Source: Neoechinorhynchus agilis
Lineage: Eukaryota > Animalia > Acanthocephala
DNA length: 64,000 nt
Assembly: GCA_051530055.1 (NCBI GenBank)
Contig: CM121342.1
Span: forward strand, 4,401,489-4,465,488
Reading direction: 5' to 3'
This document shows, one piece after another, positions 26,147 to 45,763 of the stretch (positions are counted from its first letter, which is position 1; every line of letters starts with the position of its first letter). The position numbers and the translations under genes are program-made. The notes below the pieces were generated by a model that was not told the origin of the DNA, did not search any database, and was given only the letters and a program-made list of their open reading frames with translations.

Positions 26147-29100
26147 CTATTGATCAGTCATTGTGATAACTCGCTCCACTGCTTTTTTGAGAGTGATCAA
26201 GCAAACATTATTTGGGTCGAGACAAGCCCACTCGAATTCACCAGCCTGTGTGGAGCATTTAAAAGTCATTCTATAAACCGACCACGGAACCTCCTCGGAA
26301 AACAATGAGCAATCCAATCGAAAATCACTTGTGTCCCAATGGAAGTGCCACACTTCAGCGTCGATCCAAGCATCATCGGTGTTCCTGTAGTCATCCAAAT
26401 ACCCTATAGTGAATCAGTGATTTTAAACAACAAACTTTCCAACTTGGCAACCATTACCGTTGTGAACAAGACCGAATTTAAATCCAAACGATTCTAGATC
26501 ACTCTGCTCGATCACTCGAGTCATAAACTGTACAAGAAATGAATGTGTCTTAAGGTAATCGAATACAACAACCTCAATCATCTCCGATCGGTCGAAACGT
26601 CTTTGCGTCCGCTGTGATAGAATGCTATCGACTATCGACTTTGACAGTACTTGGCACAGTTCCACATAAGAAGATGAAGTCTTTTCATATTTAGAAAAGT
26701 ATGAAAAGGTAAGGAATGCAACTCACGAATGGAAGACATGTCCAATCATTCACGTTAATTAACTTATAAAATTGAACAATTGTTGTTTTTCTTGTCACAA
26801 ACAATATTTTGAACTTGTTGGCTCCAAGATTTAAGAGGCATCCTTTACCCTTGGCACCGGTTCTACCAACTGGGTTCCTAAATGAACTCGTTGTAAAAAC
26901 GAATTTTTTTCTCTTAAAAATATAAAGCAAAGGCAGTTTAAACTTTAAAAAAAGTTCTCATTGATAGTCGATTAAAGCTGTCTATGGCTCAATATGAGCA
27001 CAAGTGTTCATTTTTCAACTCTTTATTGTTTGCATACCTTTTCTGTTCGGACGAATGTTCCTCGCTTGAGGCGTGTTCGATTTCCTTAAAATATGGCCTA
27101 TTTTGGGGCCAATTTAACACGATACTTACAATCGATGATCCTGCCGGGCTTTGCCTTAAACAAAACGATCTAAATTGACGGCGTTATAATTTCTTTCAAA
27201 AAAACCCCAACTTACCCGAAAGCTGAATCGACATCAATATTCACCACTATAGGGTTGTATTGATCACCAAACTCCTAGTGATAGTGAATTCATTTTATCT
27301 TTGTTCTTTTAAAACACTAACTCACCACATCCCATGGAACCTGATCATCACGTACGTGAGTTCGATTAATTCTTGTTCCAATGTAAGGGCTGAATCGAGA
27401 CAAACCATTCAACCTCGACTTTTCTTCATGTTGATACCGTGATTCACTAGTCACTATTTCGGCAATCAATTGTCTTATAATGCTTATTGTACTGGCTTCC
27501 TCAGTGGCCGCTCGTTGTATTATATCAGACCTAATGAACGAATTGAGGTTATTTAATAAACCGACTATCTAAAAGTGATATCGAGTAGCTTTCTCGCGAT
27601 AATGTGTGATGGAAATCCGATTTCTGAACGCATTCTGTGGCTTACTTAATGTTCAATAACCGCAATCTCTGCTCATTTTTATCCTTAGATTGCGTCATCT
27701 CAAACACCTTTTCGGCCTTTAATTTCCAATATTGATTTCCTTTATCATCCTCCCATCGCGGCTGTCCCCACTCTGAAGTATCACCTCTCGTGAACTCAGA
27801 CAACATCCCAATGAATTCCTGAAATGAGTTAGAATCCGACTCAAACTTTAATGCTCCTGGGTATTGATTAGAAGACGGCAATCCTCTGATTTGCTTGTAG
27901 ATATAGGCAAATGCGGACAATACATATGAGATTAGCGATAATGGCGGAGGAAGTCTAGGTTTTCTCTCATAGTCCATAATGATCTCGTATCGATCATACA
28001 TCCAAATCTGTTCAGAAATGGCACCGACATTCCGACCTGTAATTCCAAACATTGCAGTTAACAACGAGCGTAGAAAAACGCTCGACATGTATCCATATTG
28101 CAGAACCATTACCCATGCGATCCAAGTAGATACGGAGCATCTCGGATTAGATATTCCATGAACTGTTTTGTTCAACAAATAATGATATAATTTTAAATTG
28201 TTTCACTGACCATAGTAAGTTTCCGGGTTTCCGTATAAGAAGGACAGGCCGGATGACACTACCACAAAAAAACATAGTTAATTAGTTATTTCAGAAAAAA
28301 CTCACATTTGGAACATGATCCTCTTGTAATGTTGATTTGGCATGTAGTTGGGTCAACTATGTTTTAAAAGAGATCGATCACAAAACTCTCTTTTAAATTA
28401 AACTAACTTCCTTCCAGATCACGAATATCGGTTCTGAAAAGGGCCATAACACCCCTTTTCAGGACGCGGGTCACAAGATCTTGGTTGAGAGGATGATGTG
28501 GATGTATTATGGCAGTTGCTGCCACCCCAACTGACAACATAAACACCGCAAAAATGTATAAATAGCTAACAAAGTCGTCAGTTATCTGTTTTGTTAAAAT
28601 TAGCATTTAAATCTTAATCGTTTATCAGATTCATTTACCATGTACGTGAGTTTGACCATAGCAGGTCCGAGTTTAGGGTGAATGGGGTAGTATTGGCGGA
28701 ACACTCGAAGAAAAAAGTAGACCAGAAACGTACCCATCAATGACTTCATTTTGCATGGCGATGAACCTACGTTAGACAGTACATTTAAAAGACAATTTAC
28801 TTAAAGAGCCTCATTTTTCTGCTTCGGTCTCTCCAATTGACGACCTAAAGTGCTACATTTTTTAACCAAAAATTTCGATTAAAGAAATCGACTAATTGAA
28901 ACATCAAAATCGAGCCAGGTTACAAATTTGAACGCTTTTCATCGTTTGTATTAAAAATCTACAATTTTGAGTGGAAACATTATCAACTAATTTCATACTC
29001 TCTTTTGGTGACTGCGATGCATTAACGATTTTTAAGGTTTCAAAAAACCTTTTTTTTTAAGTATATGGGATATTTTTAATCTATAAAAAAGTGCCGGCGA

Positions 29101-32100
29101 TAAATCCACATAATTAGCTTTTTGAATAAAAGAGACAATGTTAAGAGTTTTTAAGTTTTTTCTTTTTTTTCCGCTAAAAAAACTTGCAAACAATTCTGAA
29201 GAAGGCCAGCGGGCAGGCCGAAAATTCAAATTGATAAATTACAATCTTTCTTCGCCAAGTCCTACAATAAATGTGGAACTTATATTCAAGTTTTGAAAAT
29301 ATTGTAATTTTTATTTTGCTAATTGTTCGTGCAGCAGAAAAATCGGCTAAAAAGTATACAAACTTGACCATCCTTCCCATAATTCAAAGAATTTCATGTA
29401 TCCAAAGGCAGTTAGAAACGAGAACTGCATTAGAACGTCGATCACGGATAATCTCAGTGGAAGATGATTGATTGTCTTAGATTTTGTGTAGCACAAACGA
29501 GCATTTTCGAAGGTAATTGAAGCTGTCCATATCCAGAAGACGAGATCGAGCAATAGGTTTCCGCATGTTGGCCAGATTGTGACAATTGAAAACAAAATGA
29601 GATAAAGAAGATAGAAAAACTAATGAGTAGTGCACCAATAGTAGATGTAAAATGTATTTTGAGTAGCCTTACCCCATCAGTAGTGAATTTGGTTACAGGT
29701 GCACCCCAAAGTAGCATTAATTTCTTCCAAAACGGAGGAGAGGCTGCTACCCGAGAAATAAATATCGCTTTCCGTCTACTAAAGCGGCTCTAAAGAAGAA
29801 GGATTTTATAATACGAATTGCACTTGAAGTTGTACCTGCTGCTTTGAACGTTCAATCTGACCACCAAAATTCTTGTCTTCTTCATTAGTTGGAGACTGCA
29901 AGGGAACATCTTTTTCGGTATTGATCCATCTATCCATAAAACGCCTCATTCTGCTCCAAATTGATAACTTATGTTTCGGTCTAAATAACTCTCCTAAAGA
30001 TCACAGATAAAAAAATCCGAAAACAAATGACATTCTCAAACCCATTGAAATACCGTGACGCCTATCACCATACAGCCGGTCTGAACCTGTAATGAATAAT
30101 TTGCATCTAGATTTGGGTTCCATCGAATCTCCTTTTCCTATGGGTGAGAAATTGATCCAAACGTACATTGGTAATACAAGTAGAGAACAGGCGAGTATCT
30201 TAACAAAATCAGGAACGTGCCACATCTCCAATGTCGTCTCTCTCAATGTAATCCCGCCGAAATAGGTTCGGGTAATCCATTTCTGGCACGACGGATGTGC
30301 CATGAACTCCTTATTCGCAACACCATGAGCGAATTCAATTGGACTTCGATCATTCCAATCAGGATACTTGCACTGAAGACTCTCGTGAGTTATCTGCTCA
30401 TTTTCCGTGAAGCTTAGATCTAACAATTTTACCGCAAAATCAGTAAAGCGAGACGAATAACTGAGAGCGAGAGATTTTTGGTAAGATTCGTGACATTTCT
30501 CACTTGTCTCATCGATTTTCGTGCTTTTGCAATGTTCGACAAAATAAACTTTTAAATGTATTTTTCAGTTTTGCTTGATTTCCCAACGCGATTTTAACAC
30601 ACTGTAGTATAAAGATCATTTGTTTATATTTAAATTATTAACTTTCCTAATTTTCTATGAAGGGTTAATGTAATTAACTAAAAAGAGAAAATTATGTTTT
30701 AAACTTTTGAGTGTTGTGCTGCACGGATTCAAACGTGATTGATAATACAGGCATCTTTTTGTAAATCTCTTGCGATGTTTTAATTTTCGAAAGTGTCTTA
30801 AGCTATAAAATTCGTCTAAAACAATTTCTCGTCGTCAAGTACAAGATCTTTATAAAAGGAAACGAACCAGAAAATGCTTAGTCGCTTAATTTTAAAATCA
30901 AAACATGAGCGAGATTAACGCTGCGAGGACAAAAATCGATGATCTAATCGTTTATAAACGGCAGCACAGAATAAAGCCGTCAGCAATGGACTTGACGAAT
31001 GTTTCCATAGATAACGAGCCAGCTCAAACCTATTCATGAGAAGTGCATAGGCTGTTAGCATTTTTAAAGCTTCTCGTTCCCTTTCGACGATAGCTTTGTT
31101 CCTCATTTTGGAATAGCTGTCGGGTTTTCGATCTGGTCGTGGAAAATCTTCTTCTGATTTGACCATAAAAATTATCCGCGGATTTGCCCCGATGAAATTC
31201 GTATGTAGCCCAGTTAGATGCCTTATAACATCCGGGAGTTGTTCACTTATGAAATCATCGGGTAATTTGTCTTCATCCTAAATATCCAGTTTTTAGAACC
31301 ATTTTTTTGAAATTATTCCCGTTATAGAATAACAAAATTAATAAAAAAAACACATTGTAATCTTCGTGCTACTCACCCCTGTTAATCCCATAATTCCTTC
31401 GACAGTTGTAGTAATAAAGAAATCTCTATCGTACGGATCCACTTCATCTTCATACTCAAATATATACTTTAATTTCTCCTCGGTGAGATACTTGTGAATT
31501 TTATATCCGTACTCTAAGAACAAATCGACAAAAGCCTCGCGTTCTTTTGTTAAGAGGGCCAACTCAAACAGAGTGGGCGTTATGACTTTGGATTTATATC
31601 TTGAAGTATCTTCAAAAATTTCTGACTTTGCAACATTGCAATTATTAAGATCAAGAGCAAGTTTTGTATCGCAGAGAAATCCGTATTGATCTTTGTCTGT
31701 GAAGGAAATCAATGCTGCTGGCTTATGCTTGACCCTAGAGATTCTCACCTTTTTTGCCACCACCTAAATTCTCAATGTGAAATCGATAGAAACGTTTGGA
31801 AAAAATTCTGACCAACAATCCACGCCTTTACAAATTCCTTTGAGATTTTCTCGAGGTTTGTTCGAGTGCACCATACATTTGAACATCGGATTCGTCTCGT
31901 TTTCTAAATACATTTATATAAAAACGTTGGAAGTTAAAAAAGTGGACATACTGAGCATTCAGTGCCAATGTACAAGAGATCTTCCACGAGTTCGCTGTTC
32001 TGTCGATGGTAATCCGGGTCGAGTGGATTGTTTTTTGACATTATTGTTGTTCGAACATATCGTGATAGTAGACGCCGAACAAAGCCATTAATCTCACTCG

Positions 32101-35100
32101 GAGTTGGACTTAAGAAGTGCAAAATTTTAGAGAAAATAACCCATCACGATTGTAGGTGTCAACGCAAACCGATTGATTTCCGGGGAAAAACAAAGCGAAA
32201 GTGAACCCACGATCACATTTGACCGCCTTTTTTTGGTTCAACCTAATTTTGCTACATCTTGGTCAAATTGCATTGGAATTATGCTAATCATGAATTTCTA
32301 TTTTACCCAAGGATACTAACGATGTCTTGAACAAAGTAATAACAACATCGATCAAATCAGCGGCTCCCTTGGTTCCAGCTAGAAGCACCATCGCTGCTGC
32401 CTTAGTCTCAAGATGGTGGCGTACTGTCTTTATGGTTTCTGCTCCGCCACCAAAGATCACATATATTAAAGGGGTAGCTATTGGTTTATCCTTATTGTCT
32501 TCGCAATCATAGTTTTGAATAACTTGTTCTAAAGTGATGCCAGTTTTTCTTTTAAATTCAAATGAAATGTGAAGACGAACGTTTTGTTTGGAAAACGGCT
32601 ATAAATGGTCCACCAATACATTGTTCACTTTGTCCAGGAGCTATCCAATAAGCACTGACACTTAACGTGTACTCAGTGTCTGGATGGAGACCTGAAATTT
32701 GCTTTTTTAGAATATCGAATAATGAAAAAATACAACAGATTTTTAAGGGTGCAAACGAAATGTCTTTGGATTTTTAAGATGTCTAAATCAAATGTCTATA
32801 TTTCATTGCTCTTTTGCACTGGAATAATGCGTATGGTTGAAAAACTAAGATCTAGAAGCTTATTTTTTTTATTTTCGCCGTATATACATAATTAAAGTTT
32901 AGATTAAAACTTAGAAAAAGTGCCTCGTAAAGCCAATGGAGATTACGTTAGTAAATAGAAAAAACGAGAAAATCCTCTTGGTATGTCATTATAGAAAATG
33001 GCGTTTTCAACACATAAGTGAACGATTTCATTCAAATCGCAAATATTTGTGTCCTTTAATAAGACATTAGCATATAAAACGGGAAACGTAAAAGTTGCTT
33101 AAACTTCTAAAAGAAAAAATGATTGTGTTCTGCGAGTATTATGAAATGTAAACTGAACAGAATTCAATTATACCTGTAAAATGGCATCGAGTGACACAAG
33201 TTTCCAGGGCCCGAGAAGCGACCAAATTTCCATCTGAGTTGATTATCCGAATACTGTGGAACGTTGTAGGGTGGAAAGGAACAAAGGAAACTGTGACTTG
33301 ATCTGAAGACGGGACACACTCGATATCCATTGATTGGCTTGAACTCTTTATGCAATCTTTTCGTCGCATATACATTGGCAGTTTGGATGGAACGGGGACT
33401 GATTCGTTTGCTTGAGCTTAGAATGAAATGATAGATTTGCAATTAAGAAATAAACTAACAAAAAATATGCCGAATATCGATCAATAGTTTTGTTTCATCC
33501 GATCGTCCGTATAGCGTTTTGCTTTGAACAGAAAATACGATTTTCGGCTATATTAGATGCACATTTGGAGTTCGCTAAATCACTTTAGGGCTCACCGGCA
33601 TTGGAGATTTGATAAATAACTCGCAAGTAGTCGAGCGTCCTTTTGGTTTTGTTGCGATTCGTCGAGCTTCTTTTCCTTCAAAGGAAACCGAAATTTCAAA
33701 ATTCTCAAATATATCATTCAAATAAGTGTTAAAGTAGGGATTATCCCACTTGATTTTGATGATGGCATGAGACTCGTAGGTTTTTAGAGAGATAATGTCG
33801 AGTTTTCGCGGTTGAATGGCTACAAAATAGTTTCCATAGTATTTTAAGACACATAAAAACACACCTCGATGGCGATCAATCAATTGAAGACGCGGAACAG
33901 TATGGCTGAATAGATAATGTTCCAATCGACAACGAAATGCATCTACAGGATTTGCACAGCAGTCACTTGAATGCTTGGTGTCGTTTCGGACAACCACAAA
34001 AAGACTATGATTCCAGTTCAACAACCTCGGATCTTGAAAACTTTTTCTATTAATTTCAAGCCTTAGTCTCTTCGAAACCTTAGACAAGGACGAAATATCG
34101 AGTAATAGGAAACAAAAAGATATTATACCCTTGTGTATCTTGCTCCGTTGGATAAAATATCGTCTTCATTGACGAATCCGATCAGGAGAATATTTCTAAA
34201 GCGATTTATTTGTTTGCGAAGTACTTCACACCATCGATTCTGGTAATCAAATCTCTCCTAGGATGGTTGATTTCGCACATCGATTTAGTTCGAATGAGTT
34301 CAAGTTCTTACCAAATATCTTTCCGTTGATTCCCCAATAACGCGGCTTATCCCGCAATCTTGTCCGTGCGTCATTATCCACAAAGAAGTTGACTCAATCA
34401 CCTAACGAAAGAGCATTTCCATCTTTTATTTTTCCCATAATGCCGTATTCTTGGTCGATCCACCATTAAATTCTCATCATTCTTTGTACAAACAGCAATT
34501 TTCGAACCTTTACGGACTTCAGATATTTGCAAGTTCCCACAAATTTAAAAATGTTACTCTAAGGCAAGCATTTTTTGAAATCATCATTTTGAATCCGTCG
34601 CTGGGGTTTGTGAAGAATGAAAGACTAAATATGTTATCGATTACAAAAAAGAGCGACGGATTCAAAATGATGATTTCAAAAAATGCTTGCCTTAGAGTAG
34701 CATTTTTAAATTTGTGGGACCTTGCAAATATTTGAAGTCCGTAAAGGTTCGAAAATTTCTGTTTGTACAGGGAAATTAAAATTCATGGAGATCACATGAT
34801 GAGAATAATGATGGATCGACCAAGAATACATCATTAAAATTTAACTAATAACACCGTCATGAATTTGAATGCAGTCGAATTGAGAAATCAAAAAGTACAT
34901 TAAAGTAAACGGCAGATTACTCAAGAATTAAATGCGAGCGAAGAATTTGGTTTTCGCGAAGGGGCAACAACTAACCTTTTCCATGCCGACAATAAATTGT
35001 TCGGTATGATGAACAAGGCGAAATATCTTCGGATCATTAGGTCTTGTTAAAACTGACAATACCAAATTCGGTGGAAGAGCGTGCATCTCAGTCACAATTA

Positions 35101-35372
35101 ACTCAACCAATCCCCGGCAATTCGCATTAGGGGAAACTCGGACAAATCTTGGTCTCTGTAAAAAAAGATATTAATATCACATCGAAAAAAAGAGGGTTTT
35201 TGCTTACGTGAGTTTGAAGATCATCTTTAAATACGAAATCTCCAAATTCAACGCTGCGGTCCGAGAATCTAGGCGACCGCCGCCTTGTAATCACTTCTGC
35301 ATCACCTCCAGATACTTGCAAATGGTCTGCGAATTGGTCGTACCGAAGTTGGATAAGATCGTCCTGTTTTTT
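26147..35372 (-). CDS. TRPM/TRPS-type cation channel with N-terminal SLOG/MHR region, FN3-like insertion and C-terminal NUDT9-homology domain; more than 20 exons; 5'-most exon not located
   Basis: FGDFVF..RFVRVS..PNLVLSV, LWIMTHG, NHSLFVVV, PLIYVIFGGG, ALLMNRFELARYLW, FMAHPSCQKWIT, APVTKF (S1), S5/pore, WMYDRYEIIMDYERKPRLPPPLSLI (TRP box), RNPVGRTG and DDYRNTDDAW (Nudix). Confidence 0.92.
29191..29233 (+). ncRNA. Minimal type I hammerhead ribozyme motif (Penelope-type), antisense within a TRP intron
   Basis: caatt CUGAAGA A GGCC-agcgggca-GGCC GAAA AUUC aaattg: intact core, 4-bp stem II, palindromic AAUU stem III, bulged stem I. Confidence 0.7.
34445..34829. mobile_element. Foldback/MITE-like element in a TRP intron (arms 34445-34602 and 34652-34829)
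   Basis: gtattcttggtcgatcc / ggatcgaccaagaatac termini; inner arms end in gaatccgtcgct / agcgacggattc. Confidence 0.75.
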
Positions 35373-37591
35373 TGTATTATTTCAATGTGAGCGGTCATTG
35401 ATAATTTTGTAGGCGATAAATTCAGTTCTCGATTTTACAAGACTATCAGAACAAAGTTTTAAGATTGTACAACTACGTTTCGCTTACTCTAATTGTACCA
35501 AAAACACCTAATGATTAATAATCTGCTTTTGAATACCTTAGGTGTTTATGTTATAAAACTACAAAAGCTTAACGAGCACAACTTCGATTTAAAATTCCTT
35601 AAGTCTTTTAAGCACAGAAGTTAACTAACTTTAGGTATGGATATCGTTTTTAGGATTAGTGCAAGAAAAATGCTATTTAATTTGAATTGCATCTATAGAT
35701 TACATCGCTCAAGAACTATTTTTGTTCTTATCACCAAACCTTCCTCAATATTTCGAACTATTTTCTTTATAAATTTAAATTCCTAATAATAGCACTTACA
35801 TAGCTGGCTTCGGATTCTGACTCAATTGTACTCATTTCCTTTTTGGTTGCTGTAAAGTATCGTTAAGTTTACTCTTTGATAATCGAGTTCTTCTTATATC
35901 AACTTTCAAGGTTGTCAATGTGTTTTCCTTTGGGGATGCTTGGGTTTGTCACACGAGCGGTATGGGGCATACAATTACGCTGAGCTCTCAAACTTCATAG
36001 GGAAATGAGTCACCGTCTTTCTTTGTAAAATTTTATGTGAACCTTCTCAATATAATTGTCTGACTCCGTTCTCGAATGAGGTATAGTTATGTAATTGGTG
36101 ATTGGCAAGTCCTGAATCTTTGTACGGGATGAGACCGAAATCTGCTTAACGTTCACTAAAAGCTTATCTTGATCCGATTGCAAACTGAACACGCTTTTGT
36201 GCAAATTGGCACCCATCAAACAGTTAAGAATACTTAATGGAAGCAAATCCTAAGGCGTTAAAACAATTGTGTTCAATTCACAGAACTAATAGCGATGGTA
36301 AGTGGGTCTTAGGCGGCTCATTAAGAACCTTTTTCGAAGTAGTGTAGCATTTATCCCGTTTAGGGTATATAAAAATTTAGTTCTAATACATTTTTTACTC
36401 GGATTTGTTAAGATCGCGGTTTACACATGGAACAAGCAGAGGTTTTCTTATAACAGAAAAGTCAACTGGCGCATAGAAAATGATCCAATAAACTACACGC
36501 CTATCGTCCATTAGTTCTTTGACTTCTTTTTAACAAACATCCTTGTATAAAATTTAAAGCACTGAAATAATGTGGAACACTAGTTCGAGAGCACACAACA
36601 TTTATGTTTTTGAAAACTTCAAAAAATCCAAAAGTGCTAATTTCTGGATTTCCGTTAACGTTAGAATTATCGCTAACGTAGTTATAAAATTAAGTCTTCG
36701 AACAATGAGAAACCGGATTAAACTTGATTTTTTGAGCTAATTTTAATTCTACTTTTTACAGTACGTTTCTTATACATTTAACCTCTGTCATTTTCAAGAA
36801 ACATCAAGAGAAAATCCTCGAGGATGATAGGGTTGGGACGGCTGTAGACTTAATAACGATGATCGGTAGCTGGGCACCGCCCTCTCTCTTCCGATAACTC
36901 CGATTGAAATTATTCTTTTATTCTATTTACCGGCTACGATTATAGGCGTGATAGGAATTGTAGTCTTAATGATCTTTCAATTCGGCTTATAACAATCTAT
37001 CACCTTCTTGGTATGAAAGATGGTATTTTCGTAAATATTTCTTACTATTTCAGTTTTAGAACGAAAACCTGTAAGAGAACAAAGGTGAGAAACTCATTAG
37101 ATTGAGTTTCCATATCTTTTAAATCTTGCACTTTATTTATTTTTCACATGTTGTGAAACACTGGTGACAGACAACCATGAACATGCCATTGAAATCTCTT
37201 GAAAATCATTTAACCGCGAAAATATCAACATTTTAATGAATCCGGACTTCATGAAACTCTTTTGAAAGCGGCAGGCAACTTTTATTTTAGGTTGTGCAAA
37301 ATTGGTATGTCCTGGATGACAAATAGTTTCCCAGCACAGAATAACCCAAGTCGTTATTTTGGTACAATGGAGCGATTAGTAGAATCGAATCAACTAGAGT
37401 TACCCATCTAACGGTTCGAGAAGTTCATTCTAGAGCAAAAGTAGATCATAATCTATTTTCTCGTCCATGTCTTAGAAAATTCGCCGATCTTATTGAACAA
37501 AAACAACAGAGCTTAATGCACATTCCAATTTATATTTCACTCAGTACGTATGGCAGTCAAACGAGCAGATGACTCTTCTCTCATCCTAAGT

Positions 37592-40558
37592 CTAATCGTT
37601 GGTTCTAAATATATTTTGTGGCTGAGAGCAATCGGTAGGAAGTGGACTACTTTTCTCAATATGTTCCACCGCCTCCTGTACGGTCAAAAATGCAAAAAGT
37701 TCGTCAAAGTCTTCGAAAAATCCGGTCTTGTTCGCAGTCTTCAACAATTGCTCTGTTAACGCATAAAGAAAAGGGGAGTAGAATGGTGAAACGGACGAAC
37801 CTCGCAATCCACACAGCATTAGTCGCGTCCCATGAGCCTCAGCGATCTCATCTATCTATCCATCTCTTTCAGAATTCTTTAACAAACAAAAATTCAAACC
37901 TCTAATAATGACTGTAGACCAACGGAGTCGATTGCGAACATCATTGAACAATCAAGGATAAGAAATTTTGCGTAGACGCCTGGTTTGACGTCCAAAACCG
38001 GTTCAGCACGCCCGCGTCTTGACCTTACTGAACCGATAATCTCGAAAACAATCTGTTCGACAAAAAAGGTTTTTTGTGTAGATTATAAACCTTTTGATGT
38101 ATGGCATATATCGAAGGATTATTGTGACCCCAATCATATCCACATTCGTGCCATACACGTTTTTTCAAATATTTGGCATTATATGAGACCAAAGGTGCTT
38201 CCATTAGAATTATTTTAACGTGATCGATTTCATTGACCTGCAAAGTACAACGAAGTATTGATAATAGATAAAAGTCCAAGAAGCACTAACCGAGAACACA
38301 TCTTTATCAAGAAAAACGTTTGGACTACATGGTAGTCGACCAAGGATCTTTATTGCTGGTCTAAACAAAGAGAAAATTGAGAATTCTAAAGATAGTGGAA
38401 AAAGAAGTATCACGAATCATACCTTTGGATTGTTATTGTGTTTAGAAGGAGTGAGAGAACAATGCTCATGAAGAGGCCAGTGTCCACATCGAGGATAAGA
38501 GTAGATAAAAACGCACTCATCCATACAAGCTAAAGTATATTTGTCAAATCAATAACTAAATTAAAAATAAACTTACACCCTCGATTCTCGTAATTCGCCA
38601 ATAATGAAAGCATTCCTTTACTTGCAACACTGTCGGTACTATACTAACAATGACAATCGATGCCAGAATTACCTTTAAAATCATTCGAGTATGCTGAAAA
38701 TCATAGAGAAAAAAGTTTAAACTTACGTGGGGAAGATACTGAAGATAACTGGTTAATGTATAAGTAATAATTACGAGAAATAGAGATGACACGACGGACG
38801 CCAGCTACAATGATCTAGTTTTATTAAATCGATTTTCATCAATGGAACTTTGTTGAAATGTTAATCACTCAATGTGTAGCAGAGCAATATTCGGTTTATT
38901 AATTCGAGGAAAAGTACAATGTCAAGTTCTTTTATCGCCTTGAATTGTCAAAACAGAAAAATTATTATTTTCGTTTTTACGTTGACTCGCTCATTTTTAA
39001 ATAAGTTAGCCCGATGGGATGTAAAACGGAAAATTTGAAATCTGTTTTGGTTTTTTCGATCGTGACAACATTCTCAAATGAAATACTTTTAAATTTTGAG
39101 AACAAAAGTTACCTGAGACTGTTGAAGGTTGGTTGCACCGACAGCCGTCCTGGATATCGCTCCACAAGCCGGAAAACAAGCGAAGAAGCTTATTAGAATG
39201 TTCGTGATACCATAAGCAAAGAGTTCCTTTAATTTTTGAGTAAATCGTAAAGTGAAAAGTGTTTTTACCTGATCCATGGATATTCTATACCCGTATGTGT
39301 CCGCATATCGTGCAGCAATTGAGAAATTCATGGCTATAGTGACGATAGCGACACTAAGAAAATCCATTCCGATACATGATAAATGCTTTGTTGGAGGCAA
39401 AGTAGGTTTTGGTAACCTATTTAATGTTGAACCTTAAAGAATATAATACGAGATGAGGTTATATACCCGCTAGGCATAAGTCCAATAGATGTGATGTTGT
39501 ATTTGGTATTTACACTTGAATTTGAGCAAACAATGGTCGCAATTACAATCTAATTCGACGAAATTGTTCAAATACGAACTTATTTTGAGTAGACTTACAG
39601 CGAATACTTCGAGTGGGAGAACGATCTTGACATATTTAATGTACTTTTTGTTCAAGAATCTGCCCAATGAGAGAGGAATGACAGTTATAACGAAAACGAT
39701 AACTGTCGCTGGATTGGACTGATGTACACTCTTGAATATATAATACCATCTTTTAAAGAAAACTCCGAATCCACTCGCCCTTTCCACACTGAATCCAAAT
39801 GCTGGCGGGATTTGACTTGTTAGGACGTAAACTCCCGCTGCACAGAGGTATCCACTAACTAAAGCGTCCGTTAGGTAGCTACTTAAGACTCCACATCGTA
39901 GAATGGCCATAACGATCAATGCGATTCCAACCACGAGTGCTAATGAAGTTGCGATTTCAGTTCGTAAGAGCAAAATAGACGGCAAATCGTCTGCGAGAGA
40001 TTCATTTTGAGCTATTTGTTGTTGGACACACTTATCAGTGGTTTCTTTTATAAGAAGAGACATTACAGCAATTGTTCCTTTTAAATAGTGAAAGGAATTT
40101 TTTAAAACAAAAGACTTTACCCAATGATAAATGTCTTGATCCTCCAAATATCGCGTAAAATATCGGCGCAAATAAAGAGACGTATAATCCATTTGCCGTG
40201 TTCACTCCGGCTAAATTTCCATAAGCAAGACCTTTTTTAGGCGATATGGATAAAGTTCAATTTAAAAACTTTTACCTTGAGCAATATGGACAAATCCAAC
40301 GGCTGAACCAGCTAGAAAATCATAGAATATATAATTAGATTTATATTTACTTAAAAGTTCGATGCACTGGAACCGTACGAGAATGAATTTTAGAATGGCT
40401 GTCAAATTGATTCGCCGTATATAGAACTGTTTAATTTTATCCTTGAACGTTTGATGAAGTGAAGATCGATAATGAATAGCGGTTATTTTCCTCATTTCAG
40501 GAACTGTAAATTTTCTAACTGTTTCTGGCCCAATCTCTTGGCCACGTTCATCCGACAT
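37592..40558 (-). CDS. SLC26/SulP-family anion transporter, paralog A (multi-exon, with STAS domain)
   Basis: DFLAGSAVGFVHIAQG|LAYGNLAGV..GLYVSLFAPIFYAIFGGSRHLSLG, GYLCAAG, FPACGAISRTAV, STAS-like tail GFFEDF..FLTVQEAV. Confidence 0.92.
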
Positions 40559-41183
40559 TTTTGGTTGTAACAATAAAGACGAAGAGTCCTGGATCTACAT
40601 GTGAACGAAGAAATAAATTAAAAAAATGGATTTTTTATCGTAGTTGAGATGATTTCATTTTCAAAGACATTCAAAAATAAAAACTTTACGATCACCACAA
40701 AACCTTTCTTAGGTTTTTAGGCGACGTAAAAACGTTGATTCATTCGTCAAAATGCACCATGGCGTGCTCGAATGGTTCTTTTCTTAACAAATAACATTCC
40801 TATGAGAAGAACGACACTTAAGACGTGTTCAAAGATTTTCCGTTAAGTGTCTCCTTTATCGATATTGAACAAACATCACGAAGGTTTCCTTAAAAAAACG
40901 CTCCTTACTTACATTCCTTTCGCTTTGTTGCCCCATTGTTTTATCTGACAGCTCTTTACCTAAAAATGCCTCCTTTAAATGTACCCGGAAGTTTCGACTT
41001 CATCCCGTGAACTCAGTCGTAATCTGGCCCCGAATTTGCATGGTTCAAGGCCTGTGATCATTGAACCAAACGAGTACTTAGTCCTTTCGCATTTGAAACT
41101 TATCCAGGATTAGTTCATCTCTCGTAGTCCAAAGATATATATTTTCTCAGCTTTAATAAAAGAATAAATCTTCTGGGAGATGA

Positions 41184-42150
41184 GTTGTAGAAACACTTTT
41201 TTTAATATATTTCAACTTCGTTTTATCCGAGAAAATCAAGTCGCTTTTCCCATCAGAAATATCAACAATAAAATGGAACAAAAACAAATTATAAATTTAA
41301 AAAAATCAACAATTGTCTATTACGTCTATCTTAGATTTATATTCCAATCTATAAATTTATTTTAATTCCAATATCTTCAAAAGGCGTCGCGTTTCAACTC
41401 GAATCAATCATTCGAACGGTCCACAAATTTCCATAAAATGTAAATCGGAAAAAATCTCGGTTTGGAAAAACTCACATTCTCATCACAGAAACTTACATTT
41501 GAAAATAAAACTTATAAAGGTTGCGTTGTAGAAACACTTTTTTTAATATATTTCAACTTCGTTTTATCCGAGAAAATCAAGTCGCTTTTCCCATCAGAAA
41601 TATCAACAATAAAATGGAACAAAAATAAATTATAAATTTAAAAAAATCAACAATTGTCTATTACGTCTATCTTAGATTTATATTCCAATCTATAAATTTA
41701 TTTTAATTCCAATATCTTCAAAAGGCGTCGCGTTTCAACTCGAATCAATCATTCGAACGGTCCACAAATTTCCATAAAATGTAAATCGGAAAAAATCTCG
41801 GTTTGGAAAAACTCACATTCTCATCACAGAAACTTACATTTGAAAATAAAACTTATAAAGGTTGCGTTGTAGAAACACTTTTTTAATATATTTCAACTTC
41901 GTTTTATCCGAGAAAATCAAGTCGCTTTTCCCATCAGAAATATCAACAATAAAATGGAACAAAAATAAATTATAAATTTAAAAAATCAACAATTGTCTCT
42001 TACGTCTATCTTAGATTTATATTCCAATCTATAAATTTATTTTAATTCCAATATCTTCAAAAGGCGTCGCGTTTCAACTCGAATCAATCATTCGAACGGT
42101 CCACAAATTTCCATAAAATGTAAATCGGAAAAAATCTCGGTTTGGAAAAA
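41184..42150. repeat. Tandem repeat, 341-bp unit x 2.8
   Basis: gttgtagaaacac recurs at 41184, 41525 and 41866. Confidence 0.95.
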
Positions 42151-43600
42151 TCAGAGCTCACATTCCAATCAAAAAACTTACAAAGGTTGAAAAATCTCGA
42201 GAGTACACATAATTAGTGATGAAAAGTGGTAAATATTGAAATTAAGTTTTATTCTGCAATTGAATAAAACTACAAACCTCAGGTTATCTCGATCAGAAGA
42301 GATTTGGATGTAGATTTTGGGCGTCGGAATGTCGATTCTAGACTTATCAAATATACAAAGAAAATAAATATCGATTCGGTAAGCGATGTCTTTTAGTAGT
42401 CCATTTCCTTTGGAAATAGGACCTAAAGCTGTCCGGTTGTTTGAAACTTGCAAATGAATTACCTATTCATTGCAATCTCAGTTGTCGATCACGTCGAGAT
42501 AAATAGATTTTGCAAAAGATGTATATGATATACGGAGAGACTTTACAAGGTATTTGGTTCTTCGGATGAGCAAAGCGATCAATTTCAAATACTTTGAGTT
42601 TTTAATAGTAAACATTAGGATCCTTCACACTTCTTGCATTTGGTTCCTAAGTCAAATGATTTAATCAATGGTGGTATTAAGAACACAGTATTATTCAACT
42701 AAATCAGGGATTATGGTTAAAAGTTAAATTCATGAAATAGAAGAGAGCATGAACAATCGCTTTTATGTTTCTCGTTCGGCACCATGAAATCATTTTCATT
42801 ATTATTATTTTATGCGAAAATATTACACTTTTTCAAATTTTTTAAGAGATCATGCACTTTTGTGCCTCAAAAAGCTTCAATTGCAAAATGGATTCGACCA
42901 AGATTACGATTATTACAACGATTTAAAATGACGATAATTCACTTTCACTTTATTGTTTTATCCGATTAGCAAGTACAACGTTGAACACATCCACCACAAC
43001 TCTTATCGAGATATAGTATGTGAAGAATGACGAATCAGATATAAATCTTAAAGGTTTCATTGATATCGCATTGAAAAGACTACAAGAAAAATGTTGAACG
43101 TTGCAACGAAGACTTGGGCAAAGCAGTTCAATGGTCCAATTGGATAAAAATCTTACTAAATCTTTCATTTAAAGTCCCAACTATATTCGTGTACAAACTG
43201 TAAGCTCGAAAAACGATTGCTCACCACACAGAAAACGTCTTAGAGTTTCAAAAGGAGGGCACACACTTGATACGGACTTGAGATTGCATTCCATCGCCTT
43301 CAATCTTCTTCGCTTAGCACTCAGTCTAATGTCTCAATATGCAAAACTGTTGATTTCTCCAAATGCATATCGACTTCACTTCTTTTTCAATGATGGTGAT
43401 TTAATAACATTTGCTATTACATGCTTTCAATATTATTGATCTATAATAGCAATCGAATTCACAATCAAACTCCGTTAAATGTTAAAGGCGTTACTCTACT
43501 TTAGAATGCCCAGTTTATGTACGTAAACAACGTAAAAATTTATCGAACGGCTAGTTTGAAATCAATAAAAGTCAATAATGATTTGAGCATATAGACTTTT

Positions 43601-45222
43601 GAGGCTTTCTAATAAAATTTTGGTATATGAGATTATTTGTGTCTTCGGAAAATCCCTATTATCGAAGAACTCCGATCATAGTAAGGCACAAAATCAGTCA
43701 ATGCTTAATCAATATTGTTGGAAGCTCTTAAAGATTATGGTAGCATAATTTCTTCTACTTATCAGTCGAATTCTTTATTTTTTCAAACAGTGTAAGATTT
43801 TAAATTTCTTAAACGCAATTATGAGGCTTTCTAATAAAATTTTGGTATATGAGATTATTTGTGTCTTCGGAAAATCCCTATTATCGAAGAACTCCGATCA
43901 TAGTAAGGCACAAAATCAGTCAATGCTTAATCAATATTGTTGGAAGCTCTTAAAGATTATGGTAGCATAATTTCTTCTACTTATCAGTCGAATTCTTTAT
44001 TTTTTCAAACAGTGTAAGATTTTAAATTTCTTAAACGCAATTATGAGGCTTTCTAATAAAATTTTGGTATATGAGATTATTTGTGTCTTCGGAAAATCCC
44101 TATTATCGAAGAACTCCGATCATAGTAAGGCACAAAATCAGTCAATGCTTAATCAATATTGTTGGAAGCTCTTAAAGATTATGGTAGCATAATTTCTTCT
44201 ACTTATCAGTCGAATTCTTTATTTTTTCAAACAGTGTAAGATTTTAAATTTCTTAAACGCAATTATGAGGCTTTCTAATAAAATTTTGGTATATGAGATT
44301 ATTGTGTCTTCGGAAAATCCCTATTATCGAAGAACTCCGATCATAGTAAGGCACAAAATCAGTCAATGCTTAATCAATATTGTTGGAAGCTCTTAAAGAT
44401 TATGGTAGCATAATTTCTTCTACTTATCAGTCGAATTCTTTATTTTTTCAAACAGTGTAAGATTTTAAATTTCTTAAACGCAATTATGAGGCTTTCTAAT
44501 AAAATTTTGGTATATGAGATTATTTGTGTCTTCGGAAAATCCCTATTATCGAAGAACTCCGATCATAGTAAGGCACAAAATCAGTCAATGCTTAATCAAT
44601 ATTGTTGGAAGCTCTTAAAGATTATGGTAGCATAATTTCTTCTACTTATCAGTCGAATTCTTTATTTTTTCAAACAGTGTAAGATTTTAAATTTCTTAAA
44701 CGCAATTATGAGGCTTTCTAATAAAATTTTGGTATATGAGATTATTTGTCTTCGGAAAATCCCTATTATCGAAGAACTCCGATCATAGTAAGGCACAAAA
44801 TCAGTCAATGCTTAATCAATATTGTTGGAAGCTCTTAAAGATTATGGTAGCATAATTTCTTCTACTTATCATCGAATTCTTTATTTTTCAAACAGTGTAA
44901 GATTTTAAATTTCTTAAACGCAATTATGAGGCTTTCTAATAAAATTTTGGTATATGAGATTATTTGTGTCTTCGGAAAATCCCTATTATCGAAGAACTCC
45001 GATCATAGTAGGCACAAAATCAGTCAATGCTTAATCAATATTGTTGGAAGCTCTTAAAGATTATGGTAGCATAATTTCTTCTACTTATCAGTCGAATTCT
45101 TTATTTTTTCAAACAGTGTAAGATTTTAAATTTCTTAAACGCAATTATGAGGCTTTCTAATAAAATTTTGGTATATGAGATTATTTGTGTCTTCGGAAAA
45201 TCCCTATTATCGAAGAACTCCG
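43601..45222. repeat. Tandem repeat, about 222-bp unit x 7.3, highly homogeneous
   Basis: gaggctttctaataaaattttgg at 43601, 43823, 44045, 44267, 44488, 44710, 44928 and 45149. Confidence 0.96.
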
Positions 45223-45763
45223 AAACGATCATCGTAGTCTCTTTAAAAAAATTAACAGCCAAGCGAATGTATTTAAACAACATTTTCTTGGATTACTAAA
45301 AGATCTTTTATCACTTCCAACGGTTTAACGTTTCCGTTAGAATGTTCGAAAAACAACGAAAATCATTGACTTTTCGCAATTAAGATTCGATTCTGTACAG
45401 TTAAAATTTGATTATGTTGTTGAAAACAATTGCTCAGAACAACTTTATTAATAATCAGCGTAGTATTTAAAAAATGAATCCTTTATAACTATGGTTATAG
45501 TAAAAAAAATCAAATTTAATAAAGTGATTTCGATAACTGACCACTCTCAAGTTGATACACAACTTTGATTGACCTTCATATCTTAAATATTGATAGAAAT
45601 CTCGCAATGCTGATCATAATAAAAATGCTTCCATCGCCAATCAATAAGACTTAGTGTAGATGACTGATTCGAAAATAACTGTTTAGGTCCCGGTGATTTT
45701 TGTTTTAAAATGTCGATATGTGAGCAGGTACCGAGGGTGAGTGATAATTAATTAAATTATTTG

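Follow-up and report, generated by a model that had tools for sequence, protein, structure and literature searches.

The window analysed here, a 64,000-nucleotide stretch of the genome of the acanthocephalan Neoechinorhynchus agilis, carries on its minus strand a gene for a TRPM2-like channel in which the cytosolic, ligand-sensing SLOG region is interrupted by a cassette of two fibronectin type III (FN3) domains, the second recognisable in both sequence and structure and the first predicted from its modelled fold. The gene is an intron-rich animal gene, visible as a series of minus-strand, stop-to-stop open reading frames from ~36.2 to 26.1 kb that contain recognisable TRPM pieces. Its product has been deposited as KAL7670660.1 (P0001; 1819 residues, N. 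agilis, 99% identical to the exon at 33598-34087) under the name 'hypothetical protein ACOME3_005590', with a stored Pfam annotation comprising SLOG and a TRPM2-like domain only. Named as hypothetical and with fn3 unlisted, the deposited record is under-annotated.

Structure of the TRPM2-like locus

The identity of the host protein emerges from each of its regions in turn. SLOG is recognised by Pfam as LSDAT_euk (4.7e-16) in two stretches, at residues 113-301 and again from 556, with LSDAT_prok at 556-596, and the TRPM2-like MHR region matches PF25508. When compared by phmmer with channel structures, the core (residues 1066-1446) matches TRPM2, TRPM3, TRPM4, TRPM5, TRPM7 and TRPM8 with E-values from 1e-36 to 1e-17, the match to nvTRPM2 being at 1e-36; the TRP helix, IWMYDRYE...RPRLPPP, reads as it does in TRPM2-type channels (PDB matches 1e-36 to 1e-29), and the C-terminal domain matches NUDT9 (1q33) at 2e-12 in a PDB sequence search. 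By these similarities the product is a subunit of a TRPM2-like cation channel, that is, a NUDT9H-bearing channel of TRPM/TRPS type, a designation that does not distinguish TRPM-beta from TRPS. There are no hydrophobic segments upstream of residue ~981, and the insert itself reaches a maximum Kyte-Doolittle value of 0.88; given TRPM topology, the insert is therefore placed in the cytosol together with SLOG.

The insert corresponds to residues 315-536 of KAL7670660.1 and lies between the motifs FRCRLEHYL (residue 291; coded at ~33937-33911, minus strand) and PLIYVIFGGG (residue 556; ~32474-32445, minus strand), dividing the LSDAT_euk profile at positions 167/173. A first reading of the window, made from its letters alone (the sequence-only reading), had put the corresponding motifs of human TRPM2, LRTRLEKFI and IPIVCVVLEGG, about a dozen residues apart, and had estimated the spacing in N. 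agilis at ~265 residues. The large insertion is borne out and the exact figure is not: in the messenger RNA the spacing is 256 residues (KAL7670660.1 300-555), since an overlooked 45-nt intron removes GVFLCVLKYYGNYFV. All of the peptide strings quoted in that reading are present in the protein. The exons and introns across the insert, with their counterparts in a second acanthocephalan, Pomphorhynchus laevis, are as follows.

26150..36250 (bounds approximate), minus strand: TRPM2-like channel gene, with SLOG, TRPM2-like MHR, six-transmembrane/TRP and NUDT9H regions, assigned from open reading frame pieces, Pfam and PDB matches
33865..34076, minus strand: SLOG exon ending in the helix FRCRLEHYL and the first half of the ancestral loop (HTVPRLQLIDRHR); RNA joints; LSDAT_euk profile 2-167 ends here
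33820..33864, minus strand: 45-nt GT-AG intron, phase 1, bordering the FN3 cassette upstream; spliced out in 4/4 runs; same position and phase in P. laevis
33596..33819, minus strand: exon a of the predicted FN3-1, strands A to E, IKIKWDNPY; RNA; AlphaFold 2 (AF2) model residues 8-74, predicted local distance difference test (pLDDT) ~71-85
33548..33595, minus strand: 48-nt GT-AG intron, phase 0, within FN3-1; RNA; kept in P. laevis
33460..33547, minus strand: exon b of the predicted FN3-1, strands F and G, IVFSVQSKTLYGRS; RNA and AF2 model
33417..33459, minus strand: 43-nt GT-AG intron, phase 1, separating the two FN3 units; RNA; P. laevis has a phase-1 intron in the same linker, shifted
33174..33416, minus strand: disordered linker (~28 residues) and FN3-2 exon a, strands A to E, ending HFTG; RNA and model; Pfam fn3 at residues 455-514
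32692..33173, minus strand: 482-nt GT-AG intron, phase 1, in FN3-2 directly before GLHPDTEY; RNA; same position and phase in P. laevis
32581..32691, minus strand: FN3-2 exon b, strands F and G, GLHPDTEYTLSVSAY ... FQTK; RNA, Pfam, PDB profile and VIA-align
32529..32580, minus strand: 52-nt GT-AG intron, phase 1, bordering the FN3 cassette downstream; RNA; same in P. laevis
32321..32528, minus strand: SLOG exon with the second half of the ancestral loop (QQVIQNYDCEDNKDKPIAT), then the strand and Gly-rich loop PLIYVIFGGGAET ... GTKGAAD; LSDAT_euk 173-226, LSDAT_prok 124-163, RNA

The four introns named in the sequence-only reading all run from GT to AG in phases 0, 1, 1 and 1, and their removal gives one open frame, as it had claimed. 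With the fifth, the phases across the insert read 1, 0, 1, 1, 1 in the 5' to 3' direction of the gene. A Pfam scan of single exons recovers LSDAT_euk profile positions 2-35 upstream of the insert and 173-226 downstream, with no fn3 match between them, because introns split both inserted domains.

Transcription and splicing of the insert

Evidence from RNA was taken from Logan assembly contigs of four runs of the same organism (X1-X4), mapped to 30500-35800. In each run a single long contig (4.1-6.8 kb) connects the upstream SLOG region, all of the insert and the downstream exons. The transcript contigs bear out the gene structure of the sequence-only reading, in that those of 4/4 runs match every GT-AG border it had proposed; the intron that it missed, at 33820-33864 (45 nt, phase 1), is likewise spliced out in all four. 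The RNA-derived frame is open across the insert, and the contigs of the four runs contain no joint that skips an insert exon. Sampled words of 32200-34200 were found in the four runs at 50-59%, the exons making up 1131 of the 2001 bases of that stretch. Exons are covered to a depth of 25-50, the 482-nt intron to 0-5, and a 574-nt intron and the sequence upstream of the gene both have a depth of 0; because depth on exons stands so far above that of introns and upstream sequence, the signal reflects spliced RNA and not carry-over of DNA.

Two simpler accounts of the insert were considered and rejected. That it is a chance open reading frame is contradicted by the contrast in depth between exons and introns, together with the presence of the same insert in a second species; that it belongs to a nested or separate gene is contradicted by contigs linking SLOG, FN3 and downstream exons.

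The contigs also yield several minor observations on the transcript. Run X4 has G for A (plus strand) at window position 33725, a synonymous change in a Thr codon (ACT to ACC) within FN3-1 that is probably allelic. Two short minus-strand introns upstream of the insert, 34077-34126 and 34257-34310, are retained in some contigs (X1, and X1 and X2, respectively) and removed in others, retention breaking the frame. Downstream, the contigs of 4/4 runs contain a 15-nt micro-exon at 31749-31763 (minus strand), between GT-AG introns 31764-31812 and 31697-31748, which accounts for an apparent 'GT..TG' joint. Every intron within 30500-35800 is accordingly of the GT-AG type, and the possibility of hairpin introns with other borders, which was considered, is rejected for this stretch. 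KAL7670660.1 reads VVAKKVRISRVKHKPAALISFT across 31697-31812, and because the RNA contigs of all four runs hold the micro-exon instead, the deposited model is wrong there over ~20 residues. At ~30945-31040 (minus strand) a further segment, RFELARYLWKHSSSPLLTALFCAAVYKRLDH, is missing from KAL7670660.1 and in frame in the RNA translation; by eye it resembles rotifer RHQLAKILWKRSSEPIPLALICCMMFKKLAPY. A splice end falls at 30945 in run X1, while the contigs of X2-X4 continue to 30500, which suggests a retained intron.

Structure of the inserted domains

Domain 2 (KAL7670660.1 ~450-536) is an FN3 domain by its sequence and by its modelled structure. Against Pfam fn3 (PF00041), for which the cut-off is 25, it reaches 26.6 bits when the insert is excised; on the full-length protein the match, at residues 455-514, is 20.6 bits and below that cut-off. 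A profile built from the two acanthocephalan species matched 49 PDB sequences, all of them FN3, the best at 1.3e-6, and the AF2 model of the domain superposes on 10Fn3 (1fna) with Z 11.6 and 2.6 Å over 88 residues in VIA-align. The tyrosine-corner motif LxPxTxY is present as GLHPDTEY in N. agilis and GLTPNTMY in P. laevis, while the B-strand Trp of FN3 is replaced by Phe. The GLxPxTEY string that the sequence-only reading had picked out as an FN3 signature thus belongs to a domain that passes Pfam fn3 on the excised insert and superposes on 10Fn3.

The case for domain 1 is made from structure and motif. Single-sequence AlphaFold on residues 285-620 was uninformative (pLDDT 34), whereas AF2 on the two-species alignment gave a mean pLDDT of 69.6 and two seven-strand domains, at model residues 8-102 and 139-223, with blocks mostly at 66-85 and a disordered linker at model residues 107-134 between the two sandwiches. 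Within this model domain 1 has seven strands, its 10-residue blocks having pLDDT 71-85. It also retains, in both species, a B-strand Trp (IKIKW in N. agilis, TFRW in P. laevis) and the F-strand and FG-loop motif VFSVQSKTLYGRS. Features from a protein language model point to fn3 for the whole insert and for each half (for domain 1, score 0.93 and 147 shared features), and we treat these as leads only. A Foldseek search of the PDB gave at least 500 matches at E <= 0.001, the best at 8.4e-10. The best 50 of these are without exception structures of FN3 domains, for the most part tandem pairs, and their alignments extend over ~225-240 columns; because of that span, both halves of the insert contribute to the match. 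Two-domain alignments in VIA-align cover model residues 1-229, and matches among the Swiss-Prot entries of the AlphaFold database (AFDB) span query residues 6-229 and include the FN3 pairs of UNC-40/DCC and NCAM2 as well as the cytosolic ones of RIM-binding proteins (RIM-BP) and integrin beta4. On the model and the motifs, domain 1 is probably an FN3-type sandwich. The earlier proposal of two FN3-like domains spliced into the SLOG/MHR1-2 region consequently holds as a structural reading; domain 2 bears it out in sequence and structure, and domain 1 fits it in the model, with no sequence match.

Distribution and origin of the cassette

The insert has few relatives. A phmmer search with the exon at 33598-34087, which covers SLOG and FN3-1, recovered only two proteins among 1.84 billion representatives, the second being KAI0985993.1 (P0002), a 608-residue fragment from P. 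laevis. Word-indexed homologue searches with the insert or the SLOG region returned only KAL7670660.1 itself, and relatives were retrieved by the channel core instead: 20 bdelloid rotifer orthologues (from Adineta, Rotaria and Didymodactylos, with 42-46% identity) and one millipede relative. The insert is 31% identical between N. agilis and P. laevis, a figure that becomes 33% with the SLOG flanks added, and 66 positions are invariant. The motif-to-motif distance is 255-256 residues in the two worms and 29-39 low-complexity residues in the rotifers. Thus the search of other proteomes that the sequence-only reading had recommended finds the insert in a second acanthocephalan, and finds it absent from 16 of the 16 bdelloid orthologues that have both flanking motifs. 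The insert is specific to Acanthocephala among the taxa sampled. We take Neoechinorhynchus to belong to the Eoacanthocephala and Pomphorhynchus to the Palaeacanthocephala, and on that placement the insert is common to two classes.

Gene structure is conserved along with the domains. In P. laevis (locus L001), where exon borders were solved junction by junction, 4/5 intron positions are identical to those of N. agilis and 5/5 phases are the same. The shared introns are those in phase 1 before FN3-1, in phase 0 within FN3-1, in phase 1 before GLxPxT and in phase 1 after FQTK; the intron between the units is also in phase 1, and is shifted, adjoining a 14-residue insertion or deletion. The cassette and each of its two FN3 units are therefore symmetric 1-1 exon sets. 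Two bdelloids, Adineta ricciae (L002) and Didymodactylos carnosus (L003), each have a single phase-1 intron within the short loop. Stripped of its cassette, the worm gene would read HTVPRLQLIDRHR followed by QQVIQNYDCEDNKDKPIAT, a 32-residue loop (13+19) with a phase-1 intron in the middle, like the rotifer state. In the D. carnosus locus there is, in addition, a GTAAAT at ~3690, just after SEDG, where the frame breaks; this suggests a second intron just before FPVV, which A. ricciae seems to lack.

By Patthy's rule, class 1-1 modules such as FN3, Ig and EGF are shuffled into phase-1 introns. Because the phase-1 borders of the cassette and the phase-1 loop intron of rotifers fit this class 1-1 pattern, we propose exon shuffling in the acanthocephalan stem. 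A two-FN3 cassette with phase-1 introns around each unit would have been inserted, in an acanthocephalan ancestor, into the phase-1 intron of a low-complexity surface loop of SLOG (MHR1/2), some ~35 residues long and situated between the helix FRxRLE and the strand that enters the Gly-rich nucleotide-binding loop. With an empty site in rotifers and a filled one in two acanthocephalan classes, the proposed origin is unusually clean and can be dated. A recent internal duplication of one FN3 domain was also considered as the source of the pair and is unsupported, hhalign finding no similarity between domains 1 and 2.

Pore and Nudix motifs

The canonical filter F/Y-G-E/Q is absent from the N. agilis channel (KAL7670660.1 ~1325-1335; window ~28410-28480, minus strand). 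The pore motif is ALF-R-T in N. agilis, ALF-S/T-S in the bdelloid orthologues and TLF-L-S in the millipede relative, so that on these alignments the filter has been lost clade-wide and not peculiarly in N. agilis. The pore loop holds conserved cysteines. The Nudix box of the rotifer orthologues, LPGGKILG.E.PYGA.CRSFNKLA (RSFNKL), is already non-catalytic, and that of N. agilis (KAL7670660.1 ~1640-1720; window ~26.4-27.0 kb, minus strand) has decayed further, with GG lost and a segment deleted, which makes Nudix catalysis in this channel unlikely. The sequence-only reading had enlisted the FRT filter and the dead Nudix box, together with the insert, in support of a repurposed channel, for example a scaffold that is mechanosensory or tied to the cytoskeleton. 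That argument is weakened, in that counterparts of both (ALF-S/T-S and RSFNKL) occur in rotifers without FN3; because they do, the pore motif and the decay of the Nudix box predate the gain of FN3 and are not tied to the insert.

Discussion

The architecture of the N. agilis channel has partial analogues in several well-known systems. With other NUDT9H-bearing TRPM2-type channels (nvTRPM2, 6CO7; zebrafish; human) it shares SLOG/MHR1-2, MHR, six transmembrane helices and a C-terminal NUDT9H, and it differs from them in the ~222-residue tandem FN3 cassette within the SLOG loop, the ALF-R-T pore and the decayed Nudix box. Its closest full-length relatives are the bdelloid orthologues (Adineta, Rotaria and Didymodactylos; for example P0017 and P0018), which are 42-46% identical in the channel core and have the same flanking helix and strand motifs, phase-1 loop intron, odd pore motif and dead Nudix box, but whose loop consists of 29-39 low-complexity residues with no FN3. 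The TRPM6 and TRPM7 chanzymes likewise combine a TRPM channel with an added globular domain in the cytosol that came from a different gene (PMC13143021); however, their gain is the C-terminal fusion of an enzyme, the alpha-kinase, while that of N. agilis is internal, non-catalytic and in the N-terminal SLOG. Cytosolic FN3 domains are also present in the integrin beta4 tail, RIM-binding proteins and titin-type proteins, and the pairs of integrin beta4 and RIM-BP dock intracellularly. Structural matches to these pairs were obtained (6gvl and 6q9m in Foldseek; Q9JIR0 and A2A863 in the AFDB), although the likeness is one of FN3 fold only (12-17% identity) and these are scaffold and adhesion proteins, not insertions in the ligand domain of a channel. 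Finally, as in classic class 1-1 shuffling, phase-1 introns enclose the FN3 units and the cassette, and the intron at the outgroup recipient site is in phase 1. That process is associated with extracellular mosaic proteins, whereas here the modules would have entered a loop in a Rossmann-like domain of the cytosol.

The sequence-only reading knew of no described TRPM-type channel with intracellular FN3 domains, and we found none in the TRPM/TRPS domain-evolution literature that was searched. A 2026 survey of domain gain and loss in TRPM/TRPS covers melastatin, Cys-rich, channel, NUDT9H and kinase domains; its main text mentions neither fibronectin nor rotifers nor acanthocephalans, and it samples no Syndermata (PMC13143021). 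Fibronectin and rotifers are likewise absent from the main text of a 2020 paper on TRPS, as are TRPM and fibronectin from the N. agilis transcriptome paper, and our full-text literature search turned up no paper on a single polypeptide in which FN3 accompanies a TRPM or melastatin TRP channel. The combination of SLOG, FN3 and a TRPM2-like channel is therefore present in the public protein record and yet undescribed. The best-known functional classes of TRPM are defined by the domains they have gained, NUDT9H in TRPM2 and the kinase in TRPM6/7, and the cassette represents a third kind of gain, in which binding modules are inserted internally beside the SLOG ligand cleft. The acanthocephalan and rotifer channels form a natural pair, with and without the cassette, in which to ask how much the SLOG loop tolerates and whether cytosolic FN3 domains can couple a TRP channel to partners.

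The explanation that we favour, and hold on balance to be the probable one, is of a TRPM2-like subunit that gained its FN3 cassette by exon shuffling, expresses it and employs it as a cytosolic docking module. With the cassette in every contig of the four runs, the mature protein would contain two seven-stranded FN3 sandwiches joined by a disordered linker of ~28 residues. Tethers of ~13 and ~19 residues would attach the pair to the cytosolic layer that senses ligand, and a tetramer would have eight FN3 domains. It would be neither catalytic nor part of the pore, and most likely acts as a platform for protein docking, which would hold the channel to a partner in the cytoskeleton or a scaffold, or bring a regulator beside the SLOG ligand cleft.

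Several results count against this explanation, or against parts of it. The docking role is one that we infer by analogy with other cytosolic FN3 pairs, and the residues invariant between N. agilis and P. laevis are mostly canonical FN3 core positions, among which no conserved binding surface stands out. Domain 1 (~319-413) has no Pfam match at E <= 1, its two-species profile has no PDB match at E <= 10, hhalign detects no similarity between it and domain 2, and no single-domain superposition was obtained for it alone; the FN3 call for this domain comes from a medium-confidence model of two sequences and from Foldseek alignments that span both domains. Nor can the AF2 model be relied on for the arrangement of the two domains (predicted template-modelling score 0.43). 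RNA contigs are assemblies and drop rare isoforms, so that infrequent skipping of FN3 exons is possible, and the phmmer search with the SLOG and FN3-1 exon, among 1.84 billion representatives, found neither a donor FN3 gene nor a further carrier.

Three alternatives have to be set against docking. The FN3 pair might instead regulate the channel from within, packing on the channel's own cytosolic layer, either the MHR domains of a neighbouring subunit or NUDT9H, and so stabilising the tetramer or tuning the SLOG clamshell. This is a possibility that we take seriously while doubting it. The tethers of 13-19 residues are short and hold the module near SLOG, and the insertion point lies between two elements of the TRPM2 ligand site, a putative R302-type helix and the strand feeding the Gly-rich loop. 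We presume the helix before the insert to be the counterpart of the human R302 region. The ADP-ribose bound by human TRPM2 is contacted by R302 at the ribose of its adenosine group, and by R358 and the N-terminal end of helix alpha7 at its phosphates (PMC6759353). Rotifer orthologues without FN3 nevertheless keep the SLOG and NUDT9H layout, which means that the module is not needed for assembly. It is unlikely that the cassette is simply a tolerated passenger, folded and harmless in a permissive disordered loop with no specific role. The host loop is indeed long, low in complexity and variable in rotifers (29-39 residues), and the conserved positions of the insert are mainly those that determine the fold; but across two classes both domains have kept an open frame, every one of the five intron phases, all but one of the intron positions and an identity of 31%, on par with the flanking SLOG, and no skipping isoform was seen in the four runs although the omission of one unit, or of the whole cassette, would keep the frame. 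An artefact, whether a nested or separate gene, a mis-annotation or a beta-sandwich other than FN3, seems to us very improbable. Domain 1 does lack a Pfam or PDB sequence match and the deposited model does err elsewhere, yet single in-frame RNA contigs in four runs, the same arrangement in the independent P. laevis genome and the best 50 structural matches, all FN3, speak against it.

The docking explanation can be carried further, to a point at which we consider it decidedly unlikely. The FN3 pair may turn a ligand-gated TRPM2-type channel into a tethered one, the eight FN3 domains of the tetramer anchoring its SLOG layer to the cytoskeleton or to a scaffold of the syncytial tegument. Force or a bound partner would then replace ADP-ribose in driving gating or, in view of the non-canonical pore motif, a form of signalling without conduction. 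If true, this would be a new gating accessory in the TRP superfamily, derived from a datable exon-shuffling event.

Neighbouring sequence

Upstream of the channel gene and on the same strand, at ~37550-40600 (minus), lies a neighbour that by eye resembles an SLC26 or sulfate transporter, with a C-terminal STAS-like part. Further along, near-identical open reading frame pieces SEFFDNRDFPKTQIISYTKILLESLIIAFKKFKILHCLKK and IYNLFLFHFIVDISDGKSDLIFSDKTKLKYIKK occur at ~43500-45300 and ~41150-42200, in two tandem repeat arrays with periods of ~220 and ~340 bases.

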